DNA of 64,000 bases from Macrostomum lignano (Eukaryota): assembly GCA_002269645.1 (NCBI GenBank), contig NIVC01000124.1:248001-312000 (forward strand), in the 5' to 3' direction. Shown piece by piece: positions 6,734-11,499 of the stretch. The translations under genes and the position numbers were made by a program. Each line of letters begins with the position of its first letter. Positions within the stretch are counted from its first letter, which is position 1. The notes beneath the pieces are model-generated. The model did not search any database, was not told where the DNA came from, and saw only the letters and a list, made by a program, of their open reading frames with translations.

Positions 6734-9700
6734 TCAGTGCCTGATAAGTCTCACAGTGAAACAGGCAATGGCGGCCAGAACAAAGACCTGACAGGCTGAC
6801 AAAGACCCCAGCTGACTGGCTGACTTGTACCAATCGTCTGGGGGGCAGTTATTGCCCCATCCGACACTGACTCCGTTCTCCTTGTTCTTGGCAGCAATGT
6901 AGGCCTGGAGCGGTGCGAAGTAGTCAAGCAATGGTTTGGCACTGATCTGCCGTGTGCCGCTGATCTTGAACAGGGCCTCCTCCCAGTGCAGCGAGGTGCC
7001 GCTCTCCAGCAGGGCTCTGAAAGTTTGTTTATTAATAATGTAAACATCAAAATATGAACTTAATCTCGTAATAACTTCACCTGTAGCTAATTGATTCTAA
7101 TTACACGTGTAACTAACTGATGCTAATTACACGTGCAACTAACTAATGCTAATTACACCTGTAGCTAATTGATGCTAATTACACCTGCATCTAATTGATG
7201 CTAATTACACCTGCATCTAACTGATGCTAATTACACCTGCATCTAATTGATGCTAATTACACCTGCATCTAATTGATTCTAATTACACCTGTAGCTAATT
7301 GATGCTAATTACACCTGTAGCTAATTGGTGCTAATTACACCTGTAGCTAATTGGTGCTAATTACACCTGTAGCTAATTGATGCTAATTACACCTTTAGCT
7401 AATTGATGCTAATTACACCTTTAGCTAATTGATGCTAATTACACCTTTAGCTAATTGATGGTAATTACACCTTTAGCTAATTGATGCTAATTACACCTTT
7501 AGCTAATTGATGCTAATTACACCTTTAGCTAATTGATGCTGGATGCTGCTAGCGGATGTTAATTGCGACTATTTCGACTTTTGTGGTAAAAATTAAAAGT
7601 TCAAAAATAGACAGATTTTATTTGCAACTGAACATTTAATAACTGCTTTAAGGGGCATTTAAAAATTCGTTTTTTTCACAAAAAAGAGTTCGACCCGCAC
7701 TCACTTGAGCTTTGCGCCGGCGGCAGAGTTGCCGTAGATACTGCATTTGTGGAAATTTTCCGTAACACCTGCGGCCTGGCACAGCGACTGGTGGAATTGA
7801 AACTGCAGCAGTAGGCTGAGAAAGTATCTGAAAATTATTCAAACTTTTTTATCAGCTAAGAATTCAATTTAAGCCGATAAGAATTTTGCTTTAGCGGTGT
7901 ATTGGTTGGCTTGGCAACAAGTGAAGAAAACAAACATTTGACCAAGTGCTATACCCTAGTTAGGAGGTATTTCGAGTTGATAGAATTTGTTTAACATTTT
8001 CAAAATGACTTTTAACCGTCTTTTATCAAAGTTTTTTCGTCTAATTTGAAAACTCTGCCTGCCGAAACCTGGCTATTTTAATTACTCAATTCTTGCATGA
8101 GCTAAGTTTCTAGCAGAATTATTCTCACAATTAACATCGAATATTATTAGTCTTTATTATGAGTCATGTAATGCGGCAAAAGGCCATGTAATTAACGCCA
8201 AATTTAGTCTTTCAAATTGGCGTCTAATTTAGTGTTTCAAATTGGCGCCAAATTTAGTGTTTCAAATTGGCGCCTAATTTATTGTTTAAAGCCATAATAA
8301 AACCACATGAACTCGCCTCATGTACTCCACATTGGCAACCACGTGATAAATAGCGCCGGCATCGAAGTCCTCTTCCGATCGCAACACCGGACTGGAAACC
8401 CCCATCAGCTGGCAGCGCTGGTTCACCCATTCGCTGTTCCACAGATTCTTGGGCACCACGCCTTTGAACAGCTTGTACCTGTAGGTTTGTCGATGGTGTA
8501 AGTAGGCAGAGGTATACAAATTCTCCACGAGATTCTTCTTCTCGGGATTCCCTCCCCAAGACTCTCATCGCCGAGATTCCCCGATCCGGAACTTCCTTTC
8601 CCGAGTTTTCACTTCCTGAAATTAACCTTCCCGGGATTCCCTTCTCGGGATTCCCCTTCCCGGGATTCCCCTTCTTGGGATTCGCCTTCCTGGGATTCCT
8701 CTTCTCGGGATTCCCCTTCCCAGGATTCCCCTTCCCAGGATTCCTCTTACCGGGATTCCCCTTACCGGGATTCCCCTTACCGGGATTCCCCTTACCGGGA
8801 TTCCCCTTACCGGGAATTCCCTTACCGGCACTCCCCTTAGCGGGATTCCCCTTACCGGGAATCCCATTCCCGAGATTCCCCCTGCCGAGATTCCCCTGCC
8901 AAGATTTCCCCTGCCGAGATTCCCCCTGCCAAGATTCCCCCTGCCGAGATTCCCCCTGCCGAGTTTTCTCATCCCGAGATTCTCCTTTTCGAGATTTACT
9001 CCTTGAAAATCTCTCTCCATAGCTTCTACCTGTAGTTGTCAATCAAATAACCAAAAGGCAGGTAGGCGGCCTTCTTCAAAGCCATGAGGAACAGAGAGTT
9101 CAGGTAGAACTCATCGGATTCGCTGTCCGATTCAAGCAGGCCGAGTTTTCTCAGATGCCCCGGGGTCATGACTGACAGCTCGATGGTGTCGCCGATGGCC
9201 TCGTGAAAACCGGGATTGGCGCCGCCTCGGAACACCACCGGCTGCTTCTCGTACTGCTGATAGTATTGAATGTGGCCCATCTCGTGATGAGTCACCGCCA
9301 AGTAGTGGCCGGTAATCTCCGTGCACTGCTTGATGCGGAAGTCGCCTTTATCAGTGTAGAAATCCCAAGCAGACGCGTGGCAGACCATGTCAACTCCCGG
9401 CAGCTTCTCCAACACCGACTTCGCCCAGAAGGTGTCAGTCATGTTTCCTAAGCCGAGCGAGGCAAAGAAGTCTTGACTGGCTTCGAACATCTGTCTGACT
9501 GTCCAGTTCTGTTACGAGTTTCAAATGCAGACTCTTTCTTTATTCAAAATCTGACAGACAGACAGACAGACAGACAGACAGACAGACAGACAGACAGACA
9601 GACAGACAGACAGACAGACAGACAGACAGACAGACAGACGGACAGACAGACAGACAGACAGACAGACAGACAGACAGACAGACAGACAGACAGACAGACA

Positions 9701-11499
9701 GACAGACACTAAGACAGATAGACAGACAGACAGACAGCCAGCCTCACCTTCTCCCTCATCACTTTGGTGACGTCGATCTGCGGCTCATTGGGAAACGGTT
9801 TCGTGAACGGCTCCAAATCGTCCCAGCGTCCGCCCCACATGTGTCCGAGAATGTGTCCGGGAATGTGACCGGTCGGCGGGAAGATGCTAGCCGGGTATTT
9901 CTGCATCAAAGCGTGCCTCACATAGCCGTGCAGCTCCTTGTACAGCGGCAGCAGGCCGTTGAACAACTCGGCCATAACCTGCTCGAAATCCTGGCCCTCC
10001 TTGGGCTCGTACCAGCTCTGCCAGTACTTGGCGAAATTCGCGTAGCCAGCCTTCCTAATCATCTCGTTTGCCAGATCGACGTACTCCTCGTACATCTGCT
10101 TCACCGGCCTGCCGCTGGCGTCCCTCCAGCGAGACCACAGAGCCTTCTTGACCGCTTCGCTGACGTCAGGGCTGGCCATCAGGCTGACGACTTTAATGAA
10201 TTGTGAATGAAGTTATTTGATAGCAAAATGAGACAGACAAACTCTGAATGTACTTTTAGAAATTGGATGGCTAGAAATCTTTTCAAAAGCGCGCACCTCG
10301 TGAGAGGGGAATTGGCTCCCCGGTGTCTGGATGCTCCACGGTGGCTGTGCTCTGAATTCGAATCATATCGCTCCTCAGCTGACCGAACTGCAGGGGGGGG
10401 AAAGCTGCCGTTTGTCGTTTGTCTGTCTGTCTGCCTGCCTGTCTGTCTGTCTGTCTGTCTATCTGTCTGTCTGTCTGTCTGTCTGTCTGTCTGTCTGTCT
10501 GTCTGCCTGTCTGTCTGTCTGTCTATCTGTCTGTCTGTCTGTCTGTCTGTCTGTCTGTCTATCTGTCTGTCTGTCTGTCTGTCTGTCTGTCTGTCTATCT
10601 GTCTGTCTGTCTGTCTGTCTGTCTGTCTGTCTGTCTGTCTGTCTGTCTGTCTGTCTGTCTGTCTGTCTGTCTGTCTGTCTGTCTGTCTGTCTGTCTGTCT
10701 GTCTGTCTGTCTGTCTGCCTGTCTGTCTGTCTGTCTATCTGTCTGTCTGCCTGCCTGCCTGTCTGTCTGTCTGTCTATCTGTCTGTCTGTCTGTCTGTCT
10801 TTCTGCCTGCCTGTCTGTCTGTCTGTCTATCTGTCTGTCTGTCTGTCTGTCTGTCTATCTGTCTGTCTGTCTGTCTGTCTATCTGTCTGTCTGTCTGTCT
10901 GTCTGCCTGCCTGCCTGTCTGTCTGTCTGACTGTCTGTCTGTCTGTCTATCTGTCTGTCTGTCTGTCTGTCTGTCTGTCTGTCTGTCTGTCTGTCTGTCT
11001 GTGTGTCTGTCTGTCTGTCTGTCTGTCTGTCTGTCTGTCTGTCTGTCTTTCTGCCTATCTGTCTGTCTGTCTGTCTGTCTGTCTGTCTGTCTGTCTGTCT
11101 GTCTGTCTGTCTGTCTGTCTATCCATCCAGCCTCACCCGAGTCTGCTTGGCCTCATCCGTCACAATCGATGTCCCAATATCGGCAGCCTTGGTGAACATT
11201 CGTTTGAGCCGCTCGTTGCCCAGGTTGGCCCAGTCGAACCGCTGGTCCATCTCCTGCCGCTTGTTGAGCATGAACTGGCTCAGCTGCAGTCTGGCTGCCA
11301 GTTCGGCCTTCTCATTCTCCTGATTGATGTCCGTGTTGTACGCCCAGCTGGCTTCCACCACCTTGTTCAGGAGTATCCTGTGCTCCCCGCTGAACTGCTC
11401 AAACCATAGCGTTGCCTCAGTTACATTCGTACTCCTGCTGTCAGCCAGACTGACTGCCGCTAGAAGCAAACAGTTTAGCAGAAGAGATCTCCGCGTCAT
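6734..11499 (-). CDS. ACE: ACE-A1: single-domain angiotensin-converting-enzyme-like peptidase (family M2), 647 aa. Exons 11499-11137, 10387-10297, 10190-9748, 9508-9030, 8478-8317, 7827-7705, 7016-6734
   Basis: Signal-peptide-like N-terminus ([19 protein letters not shown]). ACE motifs [69 protein letters not shown]. Splice phases 0,1,0,2,2,2 join into a 1944-nt ORF; intron 5 is GC-AG. Confidence 0.93.
7075..7540. repeat. 26-bp minisatellite (gctaattacacctttagctaattgat) in ACE-A intron 6; homologs 32033-32402, 48733-49224
   Basis: Direct inspection. Confidence 0.93.
8540..9000. repeat. 15-bp minisatellite (ccgggattcccctta) in ACE-A intron 4; homologs 33403-33765, 50225-50735
   Basis: Direct inspection. 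Confidence 0.93.
9553..9738. repeat. (GACA)n in ACE-A intron 3; homologs 34305-34788, 51281-52185
   Basis: Direct inspection. Confidence 0.97.
10420..11120. repeat. (TGTC)n in ACE-A intron 1; homologs 35472-35781, 52864-53219
   Basis: Direct inspection. Confidence 0.97.

Follow-up and report, generated by a model that had tools for sequence, protein, structure and literature searches.

Angiotensin-converting enzyme (ACE) and ACE2 are the textbook case in which a few prime-side residues set whether two residues or one are removed from a peptide, and those same residues explain the insensitivity of ACE2 to ACE inhibitors. A 64,000-nucleotide stretch of the Macrostomum lignano genome (assembly GCA_002269645.1, contig NIVC01000124.1, positions 248,001 to 312,000; hereafter the window) raises the question of what an enzyme of this family, peptidase M2, does when the pocket for the substrate C-terminus has been rebuilt around an intact zinc site. 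The window carries three intact peptidase-M2 genes on its minus strand, each with 7 exons and encoding 647 amino acids (aa). A first-pass annotation of the sequence had proposed that they combine an intact catalytic apparatus with a remodelled carboxylate pocket, and both an alignment and a residue map bear this out. We lean, at a little less than even confidence, towards an active C-terminal exopeptidase that would hold the substrate carboxylate with Arg273 and Tyr511, have an altered prime-side preference and bind captopril- or lisinopril-type inhibitors weakly.

A Remodelled Carboxylate Dock Beside an Intact Catalytic Site

In all ACE-inhibitor complexes Lys511 holds the terminal P2' carboxylate through a salt bridge, Gln281 and Tyr520 through hydrogen bonds and Asn277 through two waters, and Thr282 lies 4.3-5.0 Å away from bulky P2' groups (PMC12820606). 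The ACE2 counterparts of Gln281, Lys511 and Tyr520 are Arg273, Leu503 and Phe512, as the annotation had stated; Arg273 closes off S2' and holds the P1' carboxylate, which accounts for the mono-carboxypeptidase activity, and Phe274, the equivalent of Thr282, lines S1' (PMC7642307). No paper on mutagenesis of K511 or Q281 was found in our literature search, and residues 511 and 281 are not taken up in the paper on the Anopheles ACE family.

Residue equivalences were taken from an alignment to human testis ACE (tACE; PDB 2iul/1o86, the tACE number being the 2iul number plus 36) that has no gaps through either pocket motif. Positions are given here in tACE numbers and residues of the window proteins in copy 1 numbers, under which the Arg273 of the window proteins stands at position 282 and the Arg273 of ACE2 at 281. 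All three copies have replaced N277 by H268, A280 by G271, Q281 by G272, T282 by R273 and K511 by I502, in agreement with the four substitutions (at 277, 281, 282 and 511) that were first listed. Three of the four dock residues have been replaced together, at sites 95-100% conserved elsewhere. With G272, I502 and H268 in place, and Y520 (Y511) as the sole survivor of Q281/K511/Y520/N277, the window proteins do not have the classical S2' carboxylate dock.

The catalytic machinery is retained in all three copies. The zinc site and catalytic Glu (H383/E384/H387/E411) are present as H374/E375/H378/E402, the residues that serve the transition state and scissile carbonyl (H353/H513/Y523) as H343/H504/Y514, and both chloride sites, with residues as defined in PMC7642307, as R174/W476/R480 for Cl1 (R186/W485/R489) and Y212/R513 for Cl2 (Y224/R522). 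The residue map thereby agrees with the annotation, in which the equivalents of HEMGH, E411, H353, H513, Y520, R522 and Y523 were described as kept. A six-frame scan found both pocket-motif peptides and HHEMGH three times, all on the minus strand (Table 1). DAGAIYHV had been placed in exon 5 of every copy and its Ile codon is ATT exactly where it was assigned; LGHMWGGRW had been placed correctly in exon 3 of all three copies, but the interval given for it in copy 1, 9823-9843, spans only HMWGGRW, 7 of its 9 codons.

The four residues first listed are part of a wider change. Further prime-side replacements are E162 by S150, E376 by H367, D377 by Y368 and D453 by K444, and F457Y, P515V, P519E and I521M are also present. 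In the 2003 paper on the tACE structure, E162 and D377 are reported to bind the lysyl group of lisinopril. Canonical M. lignano paralogues (P0026, P0032 and the Logan contig P0025) carry GNMWAQSW and GAKYH; because they keep N/A/Q/S at 277/280/281/282 and K at 511, the remodelled dock is the derived state. P0026 (BOX15_Mlig023828g3) and P0032 (BOX15_Mlig016804g1) are the closest relatives outside the clade of the window proteins (50-53% identity, same architecture), and they keep N277, Q281, K511 and an acidic residue at 162, which the window proteins do not.

A second divergent M. lignano type (P0018/P0274) is 57-60% identical to the window genes, reads HMSGARW and GSIYH, and has Gln in place of H353. 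The window genes and P0018 have in common a set of changes at sites at least 88% conserved in other homologues, without counterpart in the canonical Macrostomum paralogues: G184R, N277H, Q281G/A, F457Y/I, W467Y, W469Y, Y481W, W486V, Q493M, K511I, P515V, P519E, I521M, P546N, D551S/C and L603I. These cluster near the dock (277, 281, 457, 511, 515, 519, 521), and several adjoin it or sit in the S2' wall. The first ACE disulfide (tACE C152-C158; copy 1 residues 139 and 146, exon 2, 10297-10387) is missing in the window genes and also in every other Macrostomum paralogue, canonical ones included, and is present in 89% of other homologues.

Within residues 226-591 the copies differ from one another only by A328E and at 382 and 394 (Y/G in copy 1, F/D in copy 2, Y/G in copy 3). 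The latter two correspond to tACE F391/E403, which we take to be the S2-subsite positions (Y369/R381 in the N-domain) behind the inhibitor selectivity of the human N- versus C-domain, and the differences may reflect sub-specialisation among the copies. Beside Tyr520, E510 (8325-8327 in copy 1) replaces Pro519 and Met replaces Ile521; Pro519 and Ile521 line the Cl2 chloride pocket close to Arg522, and chloride dependence may therefore be altered. The sequence VEY also occurs in a few Lys511-bearing ACEs (P0045, P0052, P0102) and is hence not unique to the clade.

Predicted Fold and Protein Architecture

Copy 1 matched Pfam Peptidase_M2 (PF01401) with 680.9 bits against a cut-off of 23, over profile positions 2-581 of 581, and its H374, E375, H378 and E402 form the HExxH plus downstream Glu zinc site of family M2. 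Human ACE is the closest relative of solved structure (E about 1e-150; 41-42% identity to the human ACE domains). An AlphaFold2 (AF2) model of copy 1 had a mean predicted local distance difference test score (pLDDT) of 93.8 and a predicted TM-score (pTM) of 0.89, and Foldseek aligned it to the crystal structures of the ACE N- and C-domains with target-normalised TM-scores of 0.92-0.97 and root-mean-square deviations of 1.6-2.3 Å, so that a helical fold of two subdomains, as in ACE, is predicted. Residues 266-274, which hold the exon 3 pocket motif, are coil in this model. The protein begins with a signal-peptide-like N-terminus, contains three N-x-S/T sequons and has a C-terminal hydrophobic stretch ending RLIRH. 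A Pfam scan detected the M2 domain alone, with no collectrin-like domain, and the protein stops about 35 aa past it.

Set against classical ACE (human testis ACE/somatic C-domain, Drosophila AnCE, leech TtACE; EC 3.4.15.1), the window proteins share the full M2 domain, HEMGH...E, H353/H513/Y523, both chloride sites, two of three disulfides, the signal peptide and the C-terminal hydrophobic anchor. They differ by the dock (Q281/K511/(N277) to G/I/H), Arg at 282, E162S, E376H, F457Y, P515V, P519E, I521M and the absent C152-C158 disulfide. Judged from its sequence, the product of each copy is very likely an active, secreted zinc metallopeptidase of a single domain, tethered to the membrane at its C-terminus, with a rebuilt prime-side pocket.

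The Copies Are Intact and Under Purifying Selection

Splice models were drawn manually from the DNA and then transferred to all three copies; each has an ATG start, a stop codon and a 1944-nt coding sequence. The window is 100% identical to contig NIVC01000124.1 across 46,160 bases. Copy 2 differs from copy 1 by 15 amino acids and 37/1944 nt, copy 3 differs from copy 1 by 12 amino acids, and the pairwise differences among the three range over 12-21 residues and 27-44 nt. All acceptors are AG and all donors GT save that of intron 5, a GC donor (AG/GCGAGT). We assigned this donor by homology, because only that splice gives the family-wide Y-x-R-Y-F motif; R513, Y514 and F515 of copy 1 are completed in exon 6 (7821-7827), across the GC-AG intron. 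Public models of the UniProt/WormBase type misread intron 5, either by read-through ('VEYMRR...') or by skipping three residues ('VEYFLS'), and lose the R522/Y523 equivalents.

A fourth tandem copy, known here from its motifs alone (HMWGGRW, HHEMGH and GAIYH), lies just past the window start (L001 50172-54712, NIVC01000124.1). The top database match was M. lignano PAA90205.1 (BOX15_Mlig017954g1, 98% identity), an NCBI model of 44.7 kb that merges exons of several copies. More copies or alleles were seen on another contig (BOX15_Mlig008057g2). A sequencing artefact was ruled out as the origin of the motifs, since four copies in the genome and numerous public models have them. Collapsed haplotypes are unlikely, as the repeat units differ in a retrotransposon insertion and in satellite lengths.

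The ratio of non-synonymous to synonymous substitution rates (dN/dS) among the window copies is 0.21-0.33, significantly below 1, with non-synonymous changes under-represented (binomial p = 4e-6, 2e-3, 4e-4), and the copies are therefore maintained by purifying selection. This bears on whether the proteins work at all. They could be duplicates, silent or in decay, of a genome that is rich in repeats and was recently duplicated, or have a non-catalytic role like that of C. elegans ACN-1. The locus is dense in satellites and holds a retrotransposon and truncated paralogue fragments, the public gene models here are chimeric or mis-spliced, and expression evidence was not found in the 90% clusters or the literature. 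Against this stand the selection itself, three intact reading frames with conserved splice sites, the same motifs in the fourth copy and the high-confidence predicted fold. Inactive ACE-like proteins such as ACN-1 and mammalian ACE3, which are likewise lineage-specific paralogues of the M2 fold, lack zinc ligands or the catalytic Glu; the three window copies, by contrast, keep all of these, and the fourth copy has HHEMGH. We consider a non-working enzyme very unlikely.

Rarity of the Rebuilt Pocket

Conservation was surveyed in the best 120 homologues and in the best 150 of 561 relatives that a HMMER search of 1.84 billion 50%-identity representatives returned at E<=1e-30. The closest homologues comprised 174 M2 domains in 120 proteins; of the 150 domains informative at position 511, 145 have Lys, and the other 5, all from M. 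lignano, have Ile. Position 281 is Gln in 141/149 and Arg at 282 occurs in M. lignano only, both within the best 120 proteins. Conservation in 61 single-domain homologues outside the clade is 100% for K511, 97% for Q281 and 95% for N277. Of about 235 zinc-intact M2 domains surveyed, none outside M. lignano combines non-Gln 281, Arg 282 and Ile 511. The annotation had allowed that the signature might prove common in characterised invertebrate ACEs; it is absent from these (e.g. leech TtACE, P0110) and from all other close homologues surveyed. Full-length searches found no clade member outside M. lignano.

Loss of the dock as such is less exceptional. Zinc-intact domains without Lys511 in the best 150 of 561 included the ACE2 type (D-G-R-F ... 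L/M ... F), two unnamed transcript contigs and uncharacterised proteins from a millipede (Chamberlinius hualienensis), an ostracod (Notodromas monacha), Capitella teleta and sea urchins of the genus Lytechinus. Domains with Ile511 in the centipede Strigamia maritima and the snail Physella acuta have Tyr at the H353 position (Strigamia also Gln at H513) or a gap at 277-282. The dock-less paralogues Chamberlinius P0148, Notodromas P0212, Capitella P0156, Lytechinus P0237/P0264 and Logan contig P0211 have intact zinc and catalytic residues, I, L or M for K511 and a replaced Q281. They are 35-39% identical to the window protein and belong to unrelated tree lineages; none has Arg at 282 and none is characterised. 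Outside the Macrostomum clade, both Gln281 and Lys511 are present in 200 of 231 zinc-intact domains; Lys511 alone is missing from 5, Gln281 alone from 14 and the pair from 12. The two losses are coupled (odds ratio 34, Fisher p = 1e-9, on counts that are not phylogenetically independent), which argues that the dock acts as a single functional unit.

On these sequence comparisons, zinc-intact, dock-less M2 paralogues recur across invertebrate phyla, a theme less singular than was first implied, and the Arg282 solution itself is unique to M. lignano among the surveyed domains. The window proteins are already public under automatic 'angiotensin-converting enzyme' names, and the remodelling of their pocket appears to be undescribed. 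No literature linking Macrostomum to its own ACE genes was found; the matches cite only insect seminal-fluid ACE or snake-venom history.

The Pocket Arose Independently of ACE2

A neighbour-joining tree placed all Macrostomum sequences in one clade, in which a divergent group of the window copies and P0018 is sister to the canonical group, and placed the ACE2-like sequences elsewhere. Each of the three Macrostomum groupings had a bootstrap of 200/200 and the ACE2-like clade 198/200. Remodelling of the dock thus followed a duplication specific to this lineage and was independent of ACE2. In Tajima relative-rate comparisons the window lineage had 1.3-1.8 times more unique changes than the canonical lineages (p = 0.0015-0.15), and P0018 had 1.45-2.3 times more, with smaller p-values.

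Likeness to ACE2 (EC 3.4.17.23), which the first-pass annotation had noted, was upheld in part. The window proteins likewise lack Lys511 and Gln281 with the zinc site intact, and have an Arg in MW-x-x-x-W, one residue over. Other features differ. Position 281, Arg273 in ACE2, is Gly272 in the window proteins, and their Arg stands at the place of ACE2 Phe274. They retain Tyr520 (Phe512 in ACE2) and the Cl2 residues, the Pfam scan detected no collectrin-like domain in them, and their phylogenetic origin is separate.

Convergence on ACE2 function would require Arg273 to swing into the space left by Gly271-Gly272, fill S2' and bind the P1' carboxylate, with removal of single residues and insensitivity to classical inhibitors. 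Such convergence would fit the exchange of K511 for a hydrophobic residue as in Leu503, the loss of Gln281, an Arg that adjoins the ACE2 Arg273 position, and a double Gly before it in a coil segment, which may permit repositioning. A public M. lignano model, P0048, even reads HMWARRW, with Arg at 281 too; it is fragmentary, no DNA record was found for it or for P0018, and the Arg281 reading is hence unverified. Set against these are a Tyr520 kept in all copies and in P0018, Gly or Ala at 281, the position of ACE2 Phe274 in S1' rather than S2', and a clade that is unrelated to the ACE2 clade in the tree. We regard this convergence as unlikely, and continue with the active exopeptidase anchored by Arg273 and Tyr511.

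How the Rebuilt Pocket May Bind Substrates

It is plausible, from the residues present, that the window enzymes cut peptides differently from classical ACE, and the annotation's inference of an enzyme that is probably not a classical peptidyl-dipeptidase is reasonable as a possibility. The classical Lys511/Gln281/Tyr520/Asn277 dock is reduced to Tyr520, with His at 277 and the S1' acid Glu162 gone, and a new Arg (position 282) stands on the S1'/S2' border of a less acidic prime side. The substrate carboxylate would then be anchored by Arg273 and Tyr511 in place of Lys, Gln and Tyr, neutral or acidic P1'/P2' residues would be preferred over basic ones, and captopril- or lisinopril-type inhibitors would be bound much more weakly. 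The Arg at 282 could either re-create a dock for the P2' carboxylate or block S2' in the manner of ACE2 Arg273. The dipeptidyl register may be kept because Tyr520, lost in ACE2, is retained; a shorter, ACE2-like register is possible because of the Gly-Gly-Arg segment, the hydrophobic residue at 511 and the unverified 'ARRW' of P0048.

The same residues could also be the outcome of compensated drift after duplication, in an ordinary captopril-sensitive peptidyl-dipeptidase whose positive charge has moved from Lys511 to Arg282 (and Lys453). Every catalytic, transition-state and chloride residue is retained, as is Tyr520; Thr282 lies within 4.3-5 Å of P2' groups, and an Arg there plausibly reaches the carboxylate; and tandemly amplified genes often differ little in function. 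Drift of this kind sits poorly with the joint change of three of four dock residues at sites 95-100% conserved, with about 15 more clade-specific changes at conserved sites around the pocket, with the loss of Glu162 and with the accelerated evolutionary rate. Canonical paralogues also persist in the genome, and a second classical enzyme is not needed. An unchanged ACE seems improbable to us on this balance.

A bolder version of a changed specificity is doubtful but conceivable, namely that Arg282, Tyr520 and His277 in a basic prime-side pocket constitute a third, independently evolved M2 mode of recognising the substrate C-terminus. If it were true, the cleavage register or substrate class could differ from those of both ACE and ACE2, with acidic C-termini, say, or another number of residues released. 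Resistance to captopril-type and MLN-4760-type inhibitors alike would be possible, and the tandem amplification would serve lineage-specific peptide processing.

Several points weigh against the anchoring by Arg273 and Tyr511 that we favour. The placement of the Arg273 guanidinium is extrapolated from the published Thr282 distances and the environment of ACE2 Phe274. Tyr520 and the nearby Arg might restore fully classical behaviour, or Arg273 could occlude S2' as in ACE2. D377Y is present in all three canonical Macrostomum paralogues examined and D453K in P0025 and P0032 (P0026 has Gln), and these two changes therefore lie outside the pocket shift. The Y-x-R-Y motif of the window genes depends on the homology-assigned GC-AG intron. 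The 90% clusters of window-type proteins consist of genome-derived models from NCBI and UniRef, with no Logan or transcript-assembly member, and a literature search that included the genome-paper supplements found no mention of the genes or their locus tags.

Surroundings of the ACE-Like Genes

A Ty3/gypsy-type retrotransposon with long terminal repeats (LTRs) sits a few bases past a P0018-like exon 2, and the corresponding empty site is in repeat unit 2 (about 37601-37605); the insertion accounts for a spacing of the copies of 24.7 kb as against 17.4 kb. Its open reading frames (14688-19474) encode a gag/zinc knuckle, a protease-reverse transcriptase-RNaseH-integrase and an integrase C-terminal domain. 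The P0018-type fragments match residues 1-106 only, at up to 99% identity, and the remainder of that gene is absent from the window, which suggests that one boundary of the duplication unit falls within intron 2 of an adjacent gene of the P0018 type.

Micro- and minisatellites saturate the introns and intergenic DNA (e.g. 10420-11120, 11717-12520, 7078-7540, 8560-9020, 4862-5910, 19973-22432). Introns 1 and 3 and the upstream DNA hold (TGTC)n/(GACA)n runs of 55-227 units, intron 4 has a 15-bp repeat of the GGGAATC type and intron 6 a 26-bp one, and between the genes lie arrays of 20-, 22-, 24- and 28-bp repeats, 0.3-2.5 kb long. Array lengths vary between the repeat units. A transfer RNA scan of the window found none.

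Table 1. Positions in the window of the ACE-like genes, their motifs and neighbouring elements.
Feature	Position	Strand	Remarks
ACE-like gene copy 1	6734..11499	-	exons 11137-11499, 10297-10387, 9748-10190, 9030-9508, 8317-8478, 7705-7827, 6734-7016; reading frame open
ACE-like gene copy 2	31688..36160	-	exons 35798-36160, 35347-35437, 34798-35240, 33788-34266, 33179-33340, 32567-32689, 31688-31970; splice sites as in copy 1
ACE-like gene copy 3	48391..53598	-	exons 53236-53598, 52743-52833, 52194-52636, 50758-51236, 50000-50161, 49387-49509, 48391-48673; splice sites as in copy 1
LGHMWGGRW, copy 1 (L266-G267-H268-M269-W270-G271-G272-R273-W274)	9823..9849	-	exon 3; H268, G271, G272, R273 = tACE N277, A280, Q281, T282
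HHEMGH zinc-binding/catalytic motif, copy 1 (H374, E375, H378)	9272..9289	-	third zinc ligand E402 at 9200-9202
DAGAIYHV, copy 1	8340-8363	-	exon 5
Ile502 codon ATT, copy 1	8349..8351	-	= tACE Lys511, salt-bridge partner of the substrate C-terminal carboxylate (PMC12820606, PMC7642307)
End of exon 5, copy 1: V509-E510-Y511-M512 and first two bases of R513	8317..8330	-	Y511 = tACE Y520
LGHMWGGRW and Ile, copy 2	34873-34899; Ile 33211-33213	-	motifs identical to copy 1
LGHMWGGRW and Ile, copy 3	52269-52295; Ile 50032-50034	-	motifs identical to copy 1
Intron 5 GC donor (GC-AG intron)	8311-8316, 33173-33178, 49994-49999	-	conserved in all copies
P0018-type exons 1-2 fragments	13061-13285 + 14419-14511; 36607-36741 + 37509-37601; 54947-55219 + 56608-56664	+	head-to-head with each ACE copy
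Ty3/gypsy-type LTR retrotransposon	14519-19835	+	169-bp LTRs 14519-14687 + 19671-19835, 97% identical

Implications for the M2 Family

With the Lys511/Gln281 dock discarded, an Arg one position over and Tyr520 kept, the window enzymes would be an independent evolutionary experiment on the rule that separates ACE from ACE2. Such an enzyme would be a useful scaffold to understand or engineer M2 specificity and inhibitor selectivity. Since uncharacterised dock-less M2 paralogues recur, the catalytic repertoire of the family is probably wider than its two known activities. In Macrostomum itself, the tandem amplification of an ectopeptidase and its maintenance by selection suggest a role in peptide processing that is particular to the lineage.

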